From Octopus sinensis (lineage: Eukaryota), in contig NW_021827925.1 in NCBI RefSeq assembly GCF_006345805.1, positions 1 through 9,489 of the forward strand: DNA of 9,489 nt. Direction: 5' to 3'. The position numbers and the translations under genes were made by a program. This document shows positions 1-9,489 of this stretch, one piece after another (positions within the stretch are counted from its first letter, which is position 1; every line of letters begins with the position of its first letter). The notes beneath the pieces are model-generated. The model saw only the letters and a list, made by a program, of their open reading frames with translations, was not told the DNA's origin and did not search any database.

Positions 1-2
1 AA

Positions 3-341
3 GGTTTTTGCAATATTTCCGCCCACTTTTAACCAAAAGCGCTGGGTTTTAATCTCTAGCGAGATAAATTCGCATAGGTTCCGTTCGATAGTCTTGAGGT
101 TACGTGTCTTGAGATTTTGCAGGTAGTAGATAGTCGTCCCAGTCCCAGGCGTAGAGTTATTTCTCCATTTCAGGTCAAGGGAGCAGTATCCTGGCAATTC
201 GAAGCATTGACCTTCTTTCAGCTTAGACTCGTTGACGACGATTAAGTCAGGATGGCCGCTGTTTACCATCTCAACGAAGTCGAGGTGCCGTCTCTTGACA
301 GATCGGGCATTCACAGCGATGATTTTTAGTGGCGTGGTCAT
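3..341 (-). CDS. ORF2 of element B, N-terminal APE-like endonuclease (partial, open at window edge)
   Basis: Not in the ORF track. Manual translation from ATG at 341 gives MTTPLKIIAVNARSVKRRHLDFVEMVNSGHPDLIVVNESKLKEG...PGTGTTIYY. This matches APE motifs and parallels element A ORF2 (LNIISVNARS...DILVVNETK...GTGTSLFY). Confidence 0.9.
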   Translation of the reverse strand, partial: MTTPLKIIAVNARSVKRRHLDFVEMVNSGHPDLIVVNESKLKEGQCFELPGYCSLDLKWRNNSTPGTGTTIYYLQNLKTRNLKTIERNLCEFISLEIKTQRFWLKVGGNIAKT

Positions 342-350
342 TTTGCTGGC

Positions 351-373
351 GAGCTCCTCTCTGATAGGAGCTC
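351..373 (-). promoter_or_regulatory. Perfect 8-bp hairpin in the ORF1-ORF2 spacer of element B
   Basis: GAGCTCCT-N7-AGGAGCTC lies 2 nt after the ORF1 stop and 9 nt before the ORF2 ATG. Any function is inferred. Confidence 0.45.
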
Positions 374-375
374 TT

Positions 376-1710
376 CTAGCTTCTTGGGTTTGACTCCAGT
401 TTCAGCAGTGCGTCGACACAGCGTTGGTAAAATTCCAACAGAGCATCCTTGTTGTGAGAGTCTACCTTCGCCTGCGTTTTGGCCTGCTGAGTACCGTTCC
501 TTATTGGGCTGACGGGCCTCGGTTTCACAGCCTCGGCGACAGGGGCCTGCATGCTCTGCGCACCAACCTCAACGACTTGCGTCGTCTGGGTATGGGCGTC
601 CGCCACACACGGGGTTATTAGCGGTCCGTACTTTCCAGATAGGCGTGACCGGCTTAGCTTTTACCATTACCATGCGGGTTGGGTTAGGAGACCGAGGCAT
701 TGCTTCTGCGCGGGCGGCCCATTTAGCTGCTGTTGCAGCTTTGGCCGTCGGGCATCCACCATACGAAGCGAGGTGGCCGGGGCGGTCACAATTGATACAA
801 TGCCGACCGCAGGGCTCCACTAGACTTTGTTTGCTGCCTGGGCATTCCCTTCGGTCGTGGTCCTTGCCGCAGTATAAGCACCGGCTTTTTCTTGACAGTT
901 ACGGGACAGGTGTCCGAATCTCTGACAATGGAAACATCGGACGACAGGAGGTCTGAACCATTCACAGGTGATAAGGCAGAAACCAGCTGTGATTCCGGTG
1001 CGGATCAAAGAAGTAGCTTCAGCTCGTGAGTCAAGCGTCAGCTTAGCAACTGGGATGTTGAGACCATCTCGCGTGAATCGCTCGAGAACGAACACCGAAC
1101 TGAGGGTTTCCTTCAGGTGCAGCTCTAGGTCCCGATTGGAGATCCATCGCGGAATCCCCTTTAGGACTAGTGCTGACTTTTGCGGAGTAACTAAGGCAAG
1201 TTTATGGCCGCCTTCGCCAAACGGGTTCAATCTTGCAAGCTCAGCCGAGAATGCATCAGCATCTCCGGGGCTCCTGAACTCAAGAGTGAAGGAGCCTGAG
1301 CGTTGTAATGTAATCCGTGCTTTGGAGGCTGTTGGCGACTTGGATAGGAGGTTAAACCTCTTGATCTTTCCAAGTGCCGGGTTATTAATGCTCAGAGTGA
1401 ATGTGAGGCCTGAGCTGTTAAGGTCAGACCTCGGGGGTTCGGTGGATTCTTCAACTTTGGAGGGCTCTCCTTGAACCATCTGGACCGTCGGAGCACCTCC
1501 ACTTCGACATAGATTTCTTATTGCAGACAATTGTTCGGTGGAATCTTCTTCAACTTTGATGGAAACATGTTGAACCGTCTGATCCGTCAGAACACTCCCA
1601 CTTCGACATAGGTTTCTAATTGTAGACAATTGTTTCCTTGGAACTTTTGTTCTTTTTTGTCCTTCAGTGTTTGCTTTTGCGTTTTCTTTTGAGTTTTTCT
1701 TAGGTGCCAT
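376..1710 (-). CDS. ORF1 (Gag-like nucleic-acid chaperone) of element B, frameshifted; N-terminus carries histone-like segments
   Basis: Starts MAPKK at 1710. Joining track ORFs 820-1761, 569-820 and 376-606 across indels near 860 and 600 gives knuckles CFHCQRFGHLSRNC, CLYCGKDHDRREC and CINCDRPGHLASYGGC (CX2CX4HX4C / CX2CX3HX4C / CX2CX4HX6C). This spacing is typical of Jockey/R1/I-type ORF1. Confidence 0.88.
1441..1635 (-). repeat. In-frame tandem duplication (33 aa + 32 aa) in element B ORF1
   Basis: KQLSTIRNLCRSGSVLTDQTVQHVSIKVEEDST followed by EQLSAIRNLCRSGGAPTVQMVQGEPSKVEEST. Shared DNA blocks include CCACTTCGACATAG and GACAATTGTT. Confidence 0.9.
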
Positions 1711-1732
1711 TATCAACCACAAATTCCAAAAA

Positions 1733-1764
1733 TTGAAGTTTTGAAGTTTTGAAGTTTGCAAGTT
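1733..1764. repeat. 8-bp tandem repeat (TTGAAGTT)x3 plus one degenerate unit in the element B leader
   Basis: Direct reading: ttgaagtt ttgaagtt ttgaagtt tgcaagtt. Confidence 0.8.
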
Positions 1765-1780
1765 TTTCGGGGAAAAAAAA

Positions 1781-1786
1781 TTTATT
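1781..1786 (-). terminator. AATAAA poly(A)-signal-like 3' end of element A1
   Basis: TTTATT on the + strand at the end of an AT-rich tail. The same motif ends the A2 3' fragment at 6798-6803. Confidence 0.55.
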
Positions 1787-1817
1787 AGTTAAGGGAGTTA
1801 AAAACTAACTAAACAGT

Positions 1818-1847
1818 AGACCTTCGGCATCGCTGCCTTTTCAGTCT
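1818..1847 (-). promoter_or_regulatory. Putative 3' stem-loop of element A1
   Basis: AGAC-TGAAAA-GGCA-GCGA-TGCC-GAAG-GTCT, conserved in the A2 3' end although the flanks diverge. Confidence 0.5.
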
Positions 1848-1866
1848 CCATCTCACACACGCCTCC

Positions 1867-4497
1867 CTACACACACCACAGGTTAAGACTTACCGCCTTA
1901 CCTGCCTCCAGAATAATCTTCTCTATTCGGACCTCAGAGAGGCCTTTGAGAGATGATTCCTGGGCGTCGGAGAGCTCAGTCCGGAATCCTAAGCCATAGG
2001 CTAGCCTTATGGCTCGTCTTCTTACTTTTTTAAGCACGTCAACATGCTTATCCCTGTCCTCATAGAGGTACCAAGCGTGGACGCCATAGGTCAAGACGGG
2101 TAACACCATGGCGTTAAACACGCGGAACCAGGCACCTCTGCTCAAGCGGAAAGCACGCAACGCACCTAATCGCTGCATTGCACGCATTTTCGTACGTGCA
2201 ATGTGATCATCAAACTTACCGGACGGCTTAAAGAGCACGCCCAAATAAGTCATCCGATCAACTGCAGCGATTGCTGACCCGCTCAGCAATAACCTAGGAA
2301 CAAAATTAGTGTAACCCCTCGTCCTTTTACAGACTTTAAGGACACTGCACTTGTCCGCGCACATTCTCAGACCCCTACTCCCACACCAGTTTGCAAGTCC
2401 ATCCACAGCAACCTGAAGCCTACGACACGCACACTCCGGTTTCATTGAGTGATCCCAGAGGATAATGTCGTCTGCATAGATTACCATTTCAGTACGAGCA
2501 TTGACTGGCATAGGCGCAGTGGCCATAAACACATTGAATAGTGTCGGACTGAGCACAGAGCCCTGAGGGACCCCGCGAAGGACTGTTGCGACTTTAGAAA
2601 AGACCCCCTGATGCCGCACGACCTGCCTGCGAGATTCAAGAAACCCCGACAGCCAGCGCCTTAGACACGGAGAAACCCCACACGTGGCAAGGGAACTCCG
2701 GAGGCCGTCGTGCCACACCGAGTCGAAGGCCTTTTCAATGTCGAGACTAACTAAAATACCGCATTCCCTTTTCTGGAGGGCGTTCTTCATACCAGACGAC
2801 ACCTTGTGAAGGCAGTCCCCGCATGAGCGGCCCTCCTGAAGCCCCATTGGAACTCAGGGAGGGCGTCTGCAACCATCAGCTCCTCCAGGAGCCTTGGTGC
2901 ATAATTCTTTCTAGGATTTTAGATATCGCGGGGAGCAAGGAAATGGGCCTATATCCCCCGGGGACATCATGTGGCTTCCGGGCTTTCCGATAAGGATTAC
3001 CTCAGCCACTTTCCACCTGGAGGGAATCATCCCAAGTCGCAAGCTCCCGTTAAATAAAACCTTTAGTGCAGTGATTAACCGCGGCGGGGCCTTCTTAAAG
3101 ATGGCCATCGGGATCCGATCCAAACCCGCCGCGGTGTTCTTACTTCGGGAGATTGCTGCCAGAATCTCCGCTTCAGTAATTTCGCCTGCATCGTTCCTTG
3201 ATATGCCCAGCTGGCAGCGCTTGTCCCACGACAATATCTGCTGGACAGTATCAAAGGACGATGTCTCTACGAACTGACTTCCGTCAGTTCCCGAGATGCC
3301 ATTGAGATGGGCTGAAAGTATTTCAACCACCTCAACCGGGTCCGAAGCGAGGGTTCCATCAGAGCGTTTAAGGCGCACTGACTTAGCCCCCCTTCTCCCG
3401 ACAGGCTCTTCAACTGCTTCCAGAAGTCCGGAAAGCGAGGGTCCACCCTTCGGCAGGCCCTCTCCCACCGCGAACTTTCGAGTTCGCGGATTTCTCTTCG
3501 GATCTCCCTCTGAAGCCGGCTAATCCAGCCACGAAACCAAACACGGTTCTCCTCGTAAACGCATTTGTCCCGTAGTCTGGATAGCCGGCGCTTGAACCTA
3601 ATTTTATTTAAGATCCGGTGAGGGAGCGTGGAATGTGCCTGACCCTGCACTGAGTTTGTTTGAAATTATCTCGCATGTAATCAGTCAGGGCAGCATTGAT
3701 TCCATTATCAAGCGCCTCCAACTCACGTATGTTGGCGCAGGTATTCCCCACCAGAAGTGAGGGCAACCTGCTGGCCATGAAACTCTCCAGGTTAGCCCAG
3801 GAACCCACCCGGAGGTCAAAGTATCCTGGGACCCTTTGAGGAACTGGCTCACGGAGTTCGTGCAATAGAGGCAGATGGTCGCTCCCAATATCGGACAATA
3901 AAATAGTTTTACTAACCCAATTTAGAAGACCGGGACTGACCAGAGCAAGCCCTAGCCAGTCACGTCCTCCCCTCGCGTCGACGTGGTTTGGCTCGCTCGA
4001 AGTCCGGATTTCCAGCCCGAGGTCTTCAACCAGCGTCTTCAGAGCCAAACCATGCGAGTTGGTTACCCTGAAACCAAGATCTTGATGCTTGGCATTCAGG
4101 TCCCCAACAACCATGGCCTTCGGATGCTTTTCAAAGAACTCCGTACGTGCCAGGAGCACGCCGTAAAGTTCTTCGAGTACATCCCACCTAGGTAAAATGT
4201 TAACTCGCCTATGCGAATTCTCACTTGGAGGAATTTCACACAGCTACATGAACATATACCTGGACTCTGCAAGGCAAGGTAGGGCTTGTAGAAGAGGCTA
4301 GTTCCTGTGCCACATATTGACCCCTGTTTCCAGGGTATGTGACGACAGTTGTAGCCATCAACTACGTACGGACCCCCCTTTACCTTCGTTTCGTTGACCA
4401 CCAGAATGTCCGCACTCGTGGTGGCCAACATCCTCTGAACGGCGTCCCTTTTTCCTTCCAAGGAACGCGCGTTCACCGATATGATGTTGAGCATCAT
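1867..4497 (-). CDS. ORF2 of element A1: APE endonuclease plus reverse transcriptase, broken by several single-base indels
   Basis: APE motifs SVNARS, VVNETK, VVGDLNAKH and SDHLPL. RT motifs AGLDRIP, WKVAEVILIGKP, (Y)RPISLLPAISKILE, QWGFR, LDIEKAFDSVWH, GVPQGSVLSPTLF, YADD (2478-2467) and YLGV. No RNase H domain was recognised. Confidence 0.95.
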
Positions 4498-6315
4498 ATC
4501 GGTTCTTCGCCAAGGATCTTCTTGGCCTCGGCAACGTTGCAGTGTAGCATTTCCTCTACACTGCAATTCATCTCCCTACAAAATTTTAATAGGGAAACGC
4601 ATAATTGCACCGCAGGACTAATACTGTCCTGCGGTACACGCTCGCCAGGGGCTGAGTGCAATGGCATCTCCACGTATGGAGGACGCTTTTCAGCCCCAGG
4701 TTGTGCGGACGGCGCCGCCGTTAGCCGCCTCAGAAGGCATTGCCGGCTTAGGCAACCAAGCGGACTCGGAAGCTTTCACCTGCTTTGCCAACTTTGTCGG
4801 CGAAGGCTGCACCGACCCACACGTAGCATGGCTCACAGGTTCCACTGTCTTCGCCACCCAAACGGATTTGGAAGGTTTGGCCAGTATCGCCTGCTTGCCA
4901 GGTTTTGGCGCAGGGCGCGCGACGCGACGCGGGCGACTTACTGTTGGGATTACATCCCCACCTACCTTCGGGTTGCCTCCTTGAACTTGGGCAACCTCTG
5001 AAGTTGGCAGTGTGTCCCAACTTACCACAGTTGACACCACTGCCTCTCCTTGGATGGTGAGGGGCACGTCTTGCGACCATGCTCCCCACCGCAAATAAGG
5101 CACTTCGCCTTATCCGGGCACTTTGTGGAGATGTGCCCGAACCCCTGACACCGAAAGCATTGGGTGGCTTTCGGGCGGGGCCAGGCAGCTCTCATCCTAA
5201 TGTAGCCGATCCTGGTACCAAGAAGTACCAGGCGCTCAGCTTCTGCAGGAGATCCCAGTGTAATCTCCACCACTTCAAGAGGGCGATTACCCTGCTTGAA
5301 GCGTGCAATGGCAGAGCAACTGGGGTACTCCTGCTGCAGGTGACCTAGGAGGTCATTATCCTCGAAGTCCCGAGGAACCCCGAGGAGGAGGACACTTACC
5401 TTACTTACCTTACGTTCGATCCTGACAAGGCGATGCATGCCAGGACCGAACGGATTTGACTTCTCCAGCTCCCCTTTGAAGCTGGAGAAGTCATCCTCCT
5501 TCTCCCACCCAAGCAGGAATTGGGTAGGCTCCCTCTTCAGGACTCTGTACAGCTTTGAAGGCTGGATAGAGTCTAACGTACCTAAGATCTTTATGACCGA
5601 GGCCTTCCCACTTGTAGGGAGGACCTCAAGTCGTGCCACAGCACCGAAGGTAATTCTGCCCCCGGCGCCAGTGGTCTTCTTTGGGTGTGCATCCACCTGA
5701 TCGGACACACACCCAGTACCTAAAAACATGGGGGGTTGGACGGCCAGCCGCACGTTTGGGTTTCCCCACCGTGTACCAACCGTCCTCAAGGGCAACCTTA
5801 TTTCCTGCCGTACCCACCGGGACGGCCTCAGGAGACGACACCCTGTTGGCATTAATTGACTTACCTAGGCTGGGTTTGGTACCACTAGACAAACCGCAAA
5901 CACGTGGCGAACCAGCATGCTGTGCGGTTGTGGTGGATACCAAACGATCAGAACCAGTTGCACCTGCAGCTCCCCCGACACCAGCCATAGGGGGAGCAGA
6001 GGAAGAAGTGTCTCCAGTGAGTGCTGAACCCACCTGGGAGGGTCCAGGCTTCGACTTCTCCTTCCTGCTTTCGCCTAGAAAATTAAAGACACCACTAGAA
6101 TAGCCGGAAGCGCGTGGCGGTGAACCACGGCTCCGGCAATTCATCGTAGTGGCACACTGAACCGTCTTGTCCTTCTGGGAGAGCGAGGCGGGAACACCTC
6201 CACTTCTGCATAGTCTTCTTAGTGCAGACAGCTTGCGAGCAGATTTTGCAGACAACTGTTTCCTTGGTACTTTTGCACCAGTAGATTTTCGAGCCGTTTG
6301 TTTTGTTCTAGCCAT
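4494..6315 (-). CDS. ORF1 (Gag-like) of element A1 with an N-terminal histone H3 tail; frameshifted
   Basis: Starts [28 protein letters not shown]. Knuckles are [27 protein letters not shown] and [16 protein letters not shown]. The manually read C-terminus ...[41 protein letters not shown] ends at TGA 4496-4494. Confidence 0.88.
6232..6315 (-). other. H3: Histone H3 N-terminal tail (residues 1-27) in frame with ORF1
   Basis: 22/27 identical to canonical [27 protein letters not shown]. No H3 histone fold follows. Confidence 0.95.
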
Positions 6316-6321
6316 ATTTTA

Positions 6322-6519
6322 TTATTTCCCGGTCAAAAGAATAGCTTGCGTGTTGCCGCGCATGATTGTACCAGAGATCCTCTGTCTTAGCCAAGAAGAT
6401 TCGCTTGCATCCATGTTTCTCCGAGCGATAAGGAGGCAGACGTGTTTTAAGAACTTGGATGTTTGCGGGACAAAGGCTGCGGAGATCTCGAATGCCAAAG
6501 GGACAATTACTAGTTGCAT
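6322..6519 (-). other. 65-aa ORF of unknown status in the spacer between the H2B fragment and the H3-tail ATG
   Basis: Open and identical in both copies, ATG-initiated, and stops 6 nt before ORF1. It has only a weak resemblance to the H3 histone fold. Confidence 0.25.
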
Positions 6520-6578
6520 TTGGATTGTTGAAATAGTTATTTAAAGAACAAATAAATAAAACAATTATTTTTAAAGTG

Positions 6579-6795
6579 TTATTTGTATTCTGTACTTAGT
6601 AACTGCCTTTGCACCCTCTGTATAGCATGTTTTGTTAATTCACCGGGAAGAATCAGACGAACTGCAGTCTGTATTTCACGTGAGGTAATGGTAGCCTTCG
6701 AATTCTGATAGACTAGATTTGATGCCTCGGTTTTTATTTTGTCATAAACATCAAATGTGAAACTGTCCATAGCCATCATAGCCTTCTTTGGAAAT
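6579..6795 (-). pseudogene. H2B: 5'-truncated histone H2B (C-terminal half), divergent
   Basis: IS(KK)[49 protein letters not shown] matches H2B helices 2-3. The N-terminal half is absent, and homology starts right at the A-tail of the upstream element. Confidence 0.92.
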
Positions 6796-6797
6796 TT

Positions 6798-6803
6798 TTT
6801 ATT
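6798..6803 (-). terminator. AATAAA poly(A)-signal-like 3' end of unit A2
   Basis: Minus strand reads ...TTATTAAATAAAAAA|TTTCC, joined directly to H2B sequence. Confidence 0.55.
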
Positions 6804-6844
6804 TAATAATTAATTAGAGAGGCTGTTAGTGAGGTAACATAAGG

Positions 6845-6874
6845 AGACCTTCGGCATTCCTGCCTTTTCGGTCC
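6845..6874 (-). promoter_or_regulatory. Putative 3' stem-loop of unit A2
   Basis: GGAC-CGAAAA-GGCA-GGAA-TGCC-GAAG-GTCT has the same fold as 1818-1847 with a different GNRA loop. Confidence 0.5.
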
Positions 6875-6915
6875 AGCACACACGCTCGCCTCTCTACACA
6901 ACCACAGGTTAGGAC

Positions 6916-7203
6916 TTACCGTCTTACCTGCCACCCAGTCATTATCTTCTCTAGGACCTCAGGGAGGCCTTTGAGGGACAATTCCTGGGCGTTGGAGAGC
7001 TCATCACGCCATCCTAAGCCATAGGCTAGCCGGATGGCTCGTCTTCTTACTTTCTTAAGCGCGTCAACGTGCTTTTCCCTGTCCTCGCAGAAGTGCCAAG
7101 CGTGCACGCCATAGGTTAACACGGGTAACACCATGGCGTTGAACACAGGGAACCAGGCACCTCTCCTCAAGTGGAAAGCACGCAACGCGCCTAATCGCTG
7201 CAT
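6916..7203 (-). pseudogene. C-terminal (post-RT) remnant of ORF2 from a sister subfamily
   Basis: [18 protein letters not shown]... aligns to the A1 ORF2 end with 13 differences in 83 aa and many synonymous changes. Confidence 0.9.
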
Positions 7204-9013
7204 CGTTCTTCGCCAAGGATCTTCTTGGCCTCGGCAACGTTGCAGTGTAGCATTTCCTCTACACTGCAATTCATCTCCCTACAAAATTTTAATAGGGAAA
7301 CGCATAATTGCACCGCAGGACTAATACTGTCCTGCGGTACACGCTCGCCAGGGGTGAGTGCAATGGCATCTCCACGTATGGAGGACGCCTTTTCAGCCCC
7401 AGGTTGTGCCGGACGGCGCCGCCGTTAGCCGCCTCAGAAGGCATTGCCGGCTTAGGCAACCAAGCGGACTCGGAAGCTTTCACCTGCTTTGCCAACTTTG
7501 TCGGCGAAGGCTGCACCGACCCACACGTAGCATGGCTCACAGGTTCCACTGTCTTCGCCACCCAAACGGATTGGAAGGTTTGGCCAGTATCGCCTGCTTG
7601 CCAGGTTTTGGCGCAGGGCGCGCGACGCGACGCGGGCGACTTACTGTTGGGATTACATCCCCACCTACCTTCGGGTTGCCTCCTTGAACTTGGGGCAACC
7701 TCTGAAGTTGGCAGTGTGTCCCAACTTACCACAGTTGACACACTGCCTCTCCTTGGATGGTGAGGGGCACGTCTTGCGACCATGCTCCCCACCGCAAATA
7801 AGGCACTTCGCCTTATCCGGGCACTTTGTGGAGATGTGCCCGAACCCCTGACACCGAAAGCATTGGGTGGCTTTCGGGCGGGGCCAGGCAGCTCTCATCC
7901 TAATGTAGCCGATCCTGGTACCAAGAAGTACCAGGCGCTCAGCTTCTGCAGGAGATCCCAGTGTAATCTCCACCACTTCAAGAGGGCGATTACCCTGCTT
8001 GAAGCGTGCAATGGCAGAGGCACTGGGGTACTCCTGCTGCAGATGACCTAGGAGGTCATTATCCTCGAAGTCCCGAGGAACCCCGAGGAGGAGGACACTT
8101 ACCTTACTTACCTTACGTTCGATCCTGACAAGGCGATGCATGCCAGGACCGAACGGATTTGACTTCTCCAGCTCCCCTTTGAAGTTGGAGAAGTCATCCT
8201 CCTTCTCCCACCCAAGCAGGAATTGGGTGGGCTCCCTCTTCAGGACTCTATACAGCTTTGAAGGCTGGATAGAGTCTAACGTACCTAAGATCTTTATGAC
8301 CGAGGCCTTCCCACTTGTAGGGAGGACCTCAAGTCGTGCCACAGCACCGAAGGTAATTCTGCCCCCGGCGCCAGTGGTCTTCTTTGGTGGTGCATCCGCC
8401 TGATCGGACACACACCCAGTACCAAAACATTAGGGGGGGTTGGACGGCCAGCCGCACGTTTGGGTTTCCCCACCGTGTACCAACCGTCCTCTAGGGCAAC
8501 CTTATTTTCTGCCGTACCCACCGGGACGGCCTCAGGAGACGACACCCTGTTGGCATTAATTGACTTACCTAGGCTGAGTTTGGTACCACTAGACAAACCG
8601 CAAACACGTGGCGAACCAGCATGCTGTGCGGTTGTGGTGGATACCAAACGATCAGAACCAGTTGCACCTGCAGCTCCCCCGACACCAGCCATAGGGGGAG
8701 CAGAGGAAGAAGTGTCTCCAGTGAGTGCTGAACCCACCTGGGAGGGTCCAGGCTTCGACCTCCTGCTTTGACCTAAAGAATTAAAAACACCACTAGAATA
8801 GCCGGAAGCGCGTGGCGGTGAACCACGGCTCCGGCAATTCATCGTAGTGGCACACTGAACCGTCTTGTCCTTCTGGGAGAGCGAGGCGGGAACACCTCCA
8901 CTTCTGCATAGTCTTCTTAGTGCAGACAGCTTGCGAGCAGATTTTGCAGACAACTGTTTCCTTGGTACTTTTGCACCAGTAGATTTTCGAGCCGTTTGTT
9001 TTGTTCTAGCCAT
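7191..9013 (-). CDS. ORF1 (Gag-like) of unit A2 with an N-terminal histone H3 tail; frameshifted
   Basis: Same protein as 4494-6315, with indels at different positions. It ends ...[11 protein letters not shown] across the deletion junction. Confidence 0.88.
8930..9013 (-). other. H3: Histone H3 N-terminal tail (residues 1-27) in frame with ORF1, second copy
   Basis: Identical translation to 6232-6315. Confidence 0.95.
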
Positions 9014-9019
9014 ATTTTA

Positions 9020-9217
9020 TTATTTCCCGGTCAAAAGAATAGCTTGCGTGTTGCCGCGCATGATTGTACCAGAGATCCTCTGTCTTAGCCAAGAAGATTC
9101 GCTTGCATCCATGTTTCTCCGAGCGATAAGGAGGCAGACGTGTTTTAAGAACTTGGATGTTTGCGGGACAAAGGCTGCGGAGATCTCGAATGCCAAAGGG
9201 ACAATTACTAGTTGCAT
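9020..9217 (-). other. Second copy of the 65-aa spacer ORF
   Basis: Identical translation to 6322-6519. Confidence 0.25.
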
Positions 9218-9279
9218 TTGGATTGTTGAAATAGTTATTTAAAGAACAAATAAATAAAAAAACAATTATTTTTAAAGTG

Positions 9280-9489
9280 TTATTTGGTATTCGTGTACTT
9301 AGTAACTGCCTTTGCACCCTCTGTAATAGCATGTTTTGCCAATTCACCGGAAGAATCAGACGAACTGCAGTCTGTATTTCACGTGAGGTAATGGTAGCCT
9401 TCGAATTCTGATAGACTAGATTTGATGCCTCGGTTTTTATTTTGTCATAAACATCAAATGTAAAACTGTCCATAGCCATCATAGCCTTC
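9280..9489 (-). pseudogene. H2B: Histone H2B C-terminal half, second copy (cut by window edge)
   Basis: After one missing base it reads ...LILP(G)[21 protein letters not shown], a canonical-like H2B C-terminus with TAA at 9282-9280. Confidence 0.92.

Follow-up and report, generated by a model that had tools for sequence, protein, structure and literature searches.

A probable mosaic of histone H3-tail and H4 helix-1 sequence, captured from variant histone genes, at the N-terminus of a non-LTR retrotransposon ORF1 protein

Retrotransposons without long terminal repeats (non-LTR retrotransposons), among them the long interspersed nuclear elements (LINEs), are known to take up host sequence at their 5' ends, mainly as promoters and exons, and how their particles gain access to the nucleus and to chromatin is still unsettled. 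Newly made H3-H4, in turn, is recognized by chaperones such as Hat2p/RbAp46, which hold helix 1 of H4 (residues 29-45) in a side groove and simultaneously bind H3 residues 1-15 on the WD40 face (PMC4052767). The same groove of RbAp48 receives the KRAARR motif of MTA1, which imitates the H4 arginine pairs R35/R36 and R39/R40 (PMC4139204), and residues 1-28 of H3 form a nuclear import signal with K14 and K23 as the key residues (PMC5677370). Here we describe a 9,489-nucleotide stretch of Octopus sinensis DNA (assembly GCF_006345805.1, contig NW_021827925.1, positions 1 to 9,489; hereafter the window), which carries three non-LTR retrotransposons head to tail with all of their features on the minus strand: a second and a first copy of one element (A copy 2, A copy 1), followed by another element (B). 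In element A, the product of the first open reading frame (ORF1) starts with the tail of a histone H3 variant, which is followed in frame by a piece resembling helix 1 of histone H4, and the H3/H4 origin of this N-terminal module is, judging by the sequence comparisons below, very probable. A histone mosaic at the start of a retrotransposon ORF1 is unusual; the literature searched contained no previous description of histone-derived sequence in the ORF1 of a retrotransposon, although absence there is no proof.

The module of A copy 1 opens with the ATG and the H3-variant tail, residues 1-28 (6232-6315; here and below on the minus strand of the window unless stated otherwise), passes through two codons for Leu-Ser (6226-6231) that codon comparison suggests to be a junction, and ends with the H4 helix-1-derived motif, ORF1 residues 31-41 (6193-6225). 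Translation places the tail of copy 2 at 8930-9013 and its motif, identical over all 33 nt, at 8891-8923. ORF1 residues 1-30 of A match H3 in the Protein Data Bank (PDB; E 3e-7), and the lysines K4, K9, K14, K18, K23 and K27 are all present; similarity to H3 stops at codon 28 in both DNA and protein, and no H3 histone fold follows. The motif begins two residues (Leu, Ser) past the Lys equivalent to H3 K27, agrees with canonical H4 (AIRRLARRGGV in the PDB alignment) at 8 of 11 positions and occurs twice in B. On these last points, translation and alignment confirmed what a sequence-only reading of the window had described, and its identification of the corresponding H4 segment as helix 1 of the fold agrees with PMC4052767. 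Beyond the helix-1 sequence itself, ORF1 has little of H4: an H3 tail stands in the place of the Gly/Lys-rich H4 tail, and the similarity covers 11-12 residues only, so that a complete histone fold (helix 1, loop, helix 2, loop, helix 3) is absent. After the GGV of the motif, neither DNA nor protein comparison found H4 similarity, and there the histone-derived part ends, with a GC content of 44% before this point and 56-64% just after it and with a matching step in B.

Donor genes for both pieces could be identified, which allows the steps of the capture to be reconstructed descriptively. On a contig of 2255 bp that is labelled as ant sequence (Vollenhovia emeryi; DF945167.1, assembly GCA_000949405.1; L001 hereafter) lie four divergent, Cys-rich core histone genes, namely an H2A-like gene, an H2B variant (P0002), an H4 variant (XP_011867453.1) and, 380 bp further on, the start of an H3 variant. 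ORF1 residues 1-28 are identical to the H3 variant at 28 of 28 positions, including five residues that differ from canonical H3, and the 11 differences in the 84 nt of DNA are all synonymous. The motif agrees with the H4 variant (AIRRLCRRGGV) at 9 of 11 positions, the Cys among them, and its DNA with the H4-variant gene at 24 of 33 positions. The earlier proposal that ORF1 starts with a mosaic of two core histones thus stands, and a rare group of Cys-rich variant core histones emerges from the analysis: the H2A-like, H2B-variant and H4-variant proteins of L001 are each a singleton cluster among 15 billion proteins, and L001 is the only contig found with close relatives of the window's other histone pieces. 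Comparison of the sequences largely establishes that the first 41 residues of ORF1 are H3-variant residues 1-28 joined in frame to an H4 fragment, with donors from the same cluster; that the motif's 11 codons, with the preceding Ser probably as a twelfth, genuinely come from an H4 gene; and that this gene was a divergent, Cys-bearing variant of a compact H2A/H2B/H4/H3 cluster, not a canonical one. Both donors have a Lys codon AAG at the join, the H4 variant reading Lys-Pro before the motif and the element Lys-Leu-Ser, and the junction Ser codon is one base away from that Pro codon. We infer that the join lies at or beside the shared Lys codon.

The descent of the motif from H4, as opposed to chance resemblance, was examined in several ways. 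When the 211-residue region after the tail was shuffled with its composition preserved, 8 of 11 identities with canonical H4 were reached in 3 of 2000 shuffles (P 0.0015), and 9 of 11 with the L001 variant in 0 of 2000. The sequence-only reading had suggested scoring the motif for H4 against background basic helices, and this check came out for H4: the motif scored 33.3 with canonical and 42.3 with variant H4, compared with a maximum of 27.3 in a background rich in basic helices, made up of about 110,000 11-mers from 120 H2B histones, 150 ORF1 relatives and the six frames of an unrelated 16.6-kb locus. A profile built from the three versions of the motif retrieved, at E<=10 among 177,635 distinct PDB sequences, a single match, the H4 peptide 2xyi_B (E 0.63), whose alignment spans precisely the 11 motif residues. 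On the DNA level, the 102 nt after codon 28 gave a local alignment of 26/34 with the L001 H4-variant gene, a score reached by 0 of 500 shuffles; the same 102 nt showed no alignment to the H3 continuation (P 0.26), the H2A gene or the H2B gene of L001. The position of the motif Cys is occupied by Ala in 14 of 14 ordinary H4 genes from unrelated eukaryotic metagenome loci, as also in the PDB H4 chains shown, and LCR[SR]G is found nowhere in the 330 kb of these loci. This sample of ordinary H4 was a by-product of a metagenome scan with the H2B variant, which matched only ordinary H2B genes (50-63% identity). Shuffles, background, DNA alignment and PDB profile search all favour descent from H4 over chance.

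The histone sequence upstream of ORF1 belongs to the same picture. Upstream of each ORF1 of A stands a relic of an H2B-variant gene, 5'-truncated and with one frameshift in each copy; in copy 1 it covers residues 53-122 of 122 (6579-6797; Pfam Histone, 4.5e-6) and begins directly after the A-rich 3' end of copy 2, and in copy 2 it occupies about 9277-9489 and extends off the window. Its closest protein among 5.8 billion is P0002, at 84% identity, every other H2B reaching at most 66%, and by tblastn the relics are 87-100% identical to P0002 over residues 53-122. In copy 2 (9277-9489), the last 22 residues of the relic are 100% identical to the L001 H2B variant at a DNA identity of only about 75%, and on this ground the donor H2B gene appears to have been under purifying selection until shortly before the capture. 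Between the stop of the relic and the ORF1 ATG of copy 1 lies a 263-nt spacer (6316-6578; 39% GC) with no A-run and no detectable similarity to the L001 spacers, and neither the window nor L001 contains a histone 3' stem-loop according to Rfam. Since H2B relic, spacer, H3 piece and H4 piece stand at the 5' end of the element, all on its own strand, this end is best seen as captured host histone DNA or RNA. As to L001 itself, AATAAA-like signals follow the stops of its histone genes, and a motif of about 17 nt (TGTGCTTCCGnGAAAAA-like) lies upstream of each of them (565-699, 1276-1340 and 1920-2000 of that contig); between the divergent H2A and H2B genes this motif forms a long inverted repeat, which Rfam mis-scores, far below threshold, as a microRNA precursor. 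This 17-nt motif is absent from the window.

Element B carries a reduced and rearranged form of the module, having lost part of the H3 piece and duplicated the H4 piece. Of the H3 piece it retains only KVPRKQLS (1624-1647), which sequence comparison equates with H3-variant residues 14-21 (mature numbering) and which includes the variant's private Val and Ser; the first motif repeat, TIRNLCRSGSV (1591-1623), follows at once, and the second, AIRNLCRSGGA (1492-1524), lies inside an internal tandem duplication of about 99 nt. A BLASTP alignment matches this second repeat with a decayed second copy of the motif in A (MNCRSRGSP, 6118-6144). From these arrangements, B would be A minus eight residues between two near-identical LSA-coding repeats. 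The ORF1 proteins of A and B are only 30% identical over their conserved domain, yet both have the private LS prefix and, in the motif, the change from Arg to Ser, which argues for a single acquisition followed by spread or exchange between the two lineages, and on the sequence evidence the module probably belongs to the element. The sequence-only reading had taken LCRSG as a remodelling specific to the element; this applies to the change from Arg to Ser, the sole private one in LCRSG, and not to the Cys, which is already present in the LCRRGGV of the L001 H4 variant. Neither the H3 tail nor the motif occurs in any of the 150 best ORF1 relatives from an exhaustive search; the sequence-only reading, which had named the motif's presence in related ORF1 proteins of lineages without histone capture as a ground for refutation, withstands this check. 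The Octopus sinensis relative of B and its locus are also without the module. In a word-indexed protein search, the ORF1-A N-terminus minus its tail found no relative and ORF1-B matched a single protein, from Octopus sinensis; scanning metagenomes with the ORF1 N-terminus likewise yielded nothing related.

What could such a module do? It heads about 190 Ser/Gly/Ala/Pro-rich residues and is therefore probably an exposed tail, at the tip of a long and probably disordered N-terminal region, where it would act as a short linear histone mimic. In A, the H3 1-28 piece would serve as an import signal through the retained K14 and K23; by its sequence it fits the import consensus of PMC5677370 for receptors of the Kap123/importin-4 type, which calls for small hydrophobic neighbours on either side of K14 and a spacing of seven residues or more before K23, with A-K-V at K14, V replacing A after the Lys, and A-K-S at K23. 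H3 residues 1-12 and H4 helix 1 would together present two epitopes to a single WD40 chaperone of the RbAp46/48/Hat2/Nurf55 type that acts on new H3-H4, and the ORF1 protein could in this way enter the route of histone import and deposition. The captured region upstream of the H3 variant may, in addition, supply start signals for transcription or translation. The captured coding segments are exactly those read on new H3-H4 by the import receptor and by the RbAp46/48-type chaperone. If functional, the module would couple a retrotransposon directly, through molecular mimicry, to the pathway that supplies histones. Capture of variant-histone sequence as the N-terminus of ORF1, with mimicry as its mechanism, is in our judgement likely the best explanation of the locus. 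That the module in fact functions as a mimic we consider doubtful on the present analysis, and the fullest version of the proposal, in which gene capture produced a bivalent imitation of new H3-H4 and the particle is escorted by importin-4 and by RbAp46/48 complexes (HAT1, CAF-1) to replicating chromatin, is rather unlikely; should it hold, no histone mimic from a retrotransposon, and none assembled from two histones, would precede it.

A number of observations weigh against the capture of histone genes or against its functional interpretation. The motif is too short for ordinary search statistics, and the profile match itself had an E of 0.63. A phmmer search of the PDB with the post-tail segment of A alone returned nothing at E<=10, one with the B repeats returned only unrelated weak matches, and Pfam found no histone family at E<=10 in the motif segments, whereas the L001 H4 variant matches CENP-T_C and Histone. 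Because single-sequence searches and Pfam find nothing, the case for H4 rests on the combined evidence, in which most weight falls on the uncommon Cys that motif and variant share and on the fact that the three histone pieces all trace to a single cluster. The donor comparison relies on one 2.2-kb contig with a doubtful ant label, set against the Octopus sinensis affinity of the elements. An ant and an octopus cannot plausibly share by vertical descent an H2B variant that is 87-100% identical in protein, and one of the two taxon labels therefore probably reflects contamination or transfer. Moreover, the order H2B, H4, H3 of L001 is not collinear with the order H2B relic, H3 piece, H4 piece of the element, so that a single rearrangement or template jump would not suffice. 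Function is further called into question by the absence of any intact element copy from the window, by the lack in B of the H3 residues 1-12 region and of K23, its K14 equivalent being retained, and by the composition of the motif: every version keeps the equivalents of R35, L37 and R39, but that of R40 is Ser in all copies and that of R36, Arg in A, is Asn in B, so that half of the arginines that form salt bridges in the chaperone groove are missing. Structure prediction is of little help, as an AlphaFold model of ORF1-B from a three-sequence alignment has a mean predicted local distance difference test (pLDDT) score of 35.6 and is unusable, and helices over both motifs appear in it with low confidence only.

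The conservation of the module was likewise found to be an ambiguous guide. Between A and B, module DNA is 85% identical and the ORF1 domain 44%, and identical codons encode conserved residues more often in the module (13/19) than in the domain (24/61; Fisher p 0.036). By these figures, the module is probably younger than the split of the A and B ORF1 bodies, through an exchange of 5' ends, and its conservation is for that reason weak evidence for constraint. The five LCRSG codons differ only synonymously among A and the two B repeats, but these identities and codon shares agree with a young module passed between lineages no less well than with lasting constraint, and the earlier assertion that the invariance of LCRSG shows selection was not borne out.

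Such considerations lend substance to an alternative in which the H4 fragment is genuine and has no function of its own. The capture would then have provided the element with a new 5' end, consisting of promoter, leader and the start codon of the H3 variant, the H3 and H4 codons being carried along as passengers whose apparent conservation stems only from the youth or recent exchange of the module. This possible, if not probable, account is in keeping with the DNA identities and codon sharing just given, with the broken state of every copy, with the decay of the second repeat in A and the loss of much of the H3 piece in B, and with the documented LINE 5' chimeras that carry first exons and co-opted promoters (bioRxiv 10.1101/2025.02.02.635956). 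It does not, however, readily explain why the H4 piece is in frame in both lineages and even duplicated, why the differences among the three versions of LCRSG are confined to synonymous ones, or why the invariant positions correspond to R35, L37 and R39, which contact the chaperone groove (PMC4139204), and no promoter motif in common with L001 was found in the spacer.

Two further explanations reject the module as an H4-derived part of the element. One regards the locus as a host cluster of variant histones, or a chimeric H3/H4 pseudogene, that was hit by retrotransposons, with an in-frame fusion by accident. Relic, spacer and H3 start are indeed oriented as in L001, the histone-derived part has a host-like low GC content and, with the 5' limit of copy 2 outside the window, a common 5' end of the two A copies cannot be shown. 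Against this improbable scenario, B has KVPRKQLS and the motif twice within its own ORF1, with a different 5' leader and no histone flank; from the H3 ATG, both A copies read without interruption for about 190 codons into the body of ORF1; downstream of neither element is there any trace of the rest of the H3 and H4 genes; and the copy 1 relic starts exactly at the A-rich end of copy 2. The other explanation, to which we assign very little weight, is that the motif is a chance basic amphipathic stretch or the H3 variant's own residues 29-35 with a six-residue insertion. Only 11 residues are involved, single-sequence searches return no histone and a ...QLGGV stands about as far from the N-terminus in the H3 variant too, but the shuffles with either H4 and a background that stays below the H4 score are hard to reconcile with chance, as are H4 being the sole match of the PDB profile and the rare Cys in common with the H4 variant. 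Continuation of the H3 variant was set aside on the DNA comparison, in which the H4-variant gene was equalled by 0 of 500 shuffles and the H3 continuation gave P 0.26.

The elements around the module can be summarized as follows. A copy 1 extends from its H2B relic to its A-rich 3' end (1783-6797, from self-comparison and junctions), the membership of relic and spacer being provisional. Its ORF1 (4960-6315, lower bound approximate; 2 frameshifts) encodes, in order, the histone module, the Ser/Gly/Ala/Pro-rich stretch, the conserved domain and three CCHC knuckles, and its ORF2 (1867-4566; Pfam Exo_endo_phos_2, 1.5e-9, and RVT_1, 3.6e-27) has at least four breaks, one of them an in-frame stop and the others frameshifts, of which there are at least three. 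A copy 2 (6800-9489, from self-comparison) extends past the window edge and has an ORF1 with one frameshift (7665-9013) and an ORF2 remnant left by a single large internal deletion (6916-7269). In this copy (6842-7269, compared with 1815-2178 of copy 1), the first 22 codons of ORF2 are followed, in the same frame, by the codons for the C-terminal region of the reverse transcriptase. Self-comparison shows the 5' parts of the two copies to be 98% identical and the 3' parts only 86%, which suggests that copy 2 is a recombinant between subfamilies rather than the product of a simple deletion. Element B runs downwards from 1782 and continues beyond the low end of the window; its ORF1 (569-1710) has its ATG at 1710 and at least one frameshift, and three tandem 8-nt units (CAAAACTT) stand in its leader (1711-1782) just upstream of this ATG. 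The apurinic/apyrimidinic endonuclease (APE) and reverse transcriptase found by Pfam in ORF2 of A place it among the APE-type non-LTR elements. In both A and B, zf-CCHC matches in ORF1 fall just under the Pfam cut-off, and three CX2CX4HX4C units can be read in the ORF1 translation. ORF1 proteins with an RNA-binding domain and CCHC knuckles reportedly form a class of their own in I/Jockey/R1-like elements, in a classification said to go back to work by Khazina and Weichenrieder in 2009.

Relatives of ORF1 are abundant, numbering 8863 at E<=1e-3, with thousands in arthropods and molluscs, and the 150 best belong to insects, a barnacle, a pseudoscorpion and Octopus sinensis. Closest to the ORF1-A domain are P0124-P0126, pseudoscorpion (Cordylochernes scorpioides) gene models of 1415-3409 aa with four matching stretches each, which are probably several element copies fused by gene prediction. 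Among named relatives, those nearest to the element's own proteins are from Octopus sinensis, B reaching 64% identity in protein and 81% in DNA. Throughout 1783-9489, every A-rich 3' end adjoins the 5' end of the next element with no host DNA in between; possible origins of this head-to-tail array are targeted insertion beside an existing copy, tandem formation and duplication at the DNA level. With regard to target-site duplications, the 3' ends are short and A-rich, the elements adjoin each other and copy 2 leaves the window. On the plus strand, long antisense ORFs at 4339-5001, 6167-6544 and 8865-9242 overlap with both ORF1 and the histone module and match no family; base composition is the simplest reason for them. 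A scan of the window for sigma-70 promoters and terminators was set aside as irrelevant for a eukaryotic element.

Set beside the described systems, the locus resembles several of them in part. With the 5' chimeras and 5' transductions of LINE-1 (bioRxiv 10.1101/2025.02.02.635956) it shares sense-oriented host sequence at a non-LTR element's 5' end, the likely routes of uptake, which are read-through from an upstream gene or template switching by the reverse transcriptase, and the possible gain of regulatory sequence. It differs from these chimeras in that coding sequence has been captured in frame as the N-terminus of ORF1, and in that the captured material is a mosaic of two histone genes with the relic of a third, common to two lineages whose ORF1 domains are 30% identical. 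Other I/Jockey/R1-like CCHC ORF1 proteins share the conserved domain followed by three CCHC knuckles, together with APE and reverse transcriptase in ORF2, but an H3 tail or the motif is present in 0 of the 150 best relatives. Histone H4, canonical or of the L001 type, has in common with ORF1 only helix 1 (8/11 and 9/11 residues; 26/34 nt with the variant gene), the H4 tail, helix 2 and helix 3 being absent from ORF1.

Similarly, the KRAARR motif of MTA1 (PMC4139204) is a short, basic, amphipathic segment resembling H4 R35-R40 in a protein that is not a histone. The MTA1 motif is convergent and keeps both arginine pairs, whereas the ORF1 motif descends from an H4 gene and keeps the R35/R39 pair, its binding being putative. 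Viral mimics of histone tails (ARKS-type motif, bioRxiv 10.1101/2021.11.10.468057) are comparable in that the protein of a genetic parasite displays an H3-like tail. These are look-alikes of four to six residues, and the histones encoded by viruses (reviewed in PMC9145170) are whole folds; here, by contrast, 28 residues obtained by descent from an H3 variant are combined with a fragment of H4 helix 1, without a histone fold, in the RNA-binding protein of a retrotransposon. Capture of host sequence at the 5' end of LINEs and histone mimicry by genetic parasites are thus both known, and this locus presents a new form of both, in which the ORF1 protein may pass for newly made histones.

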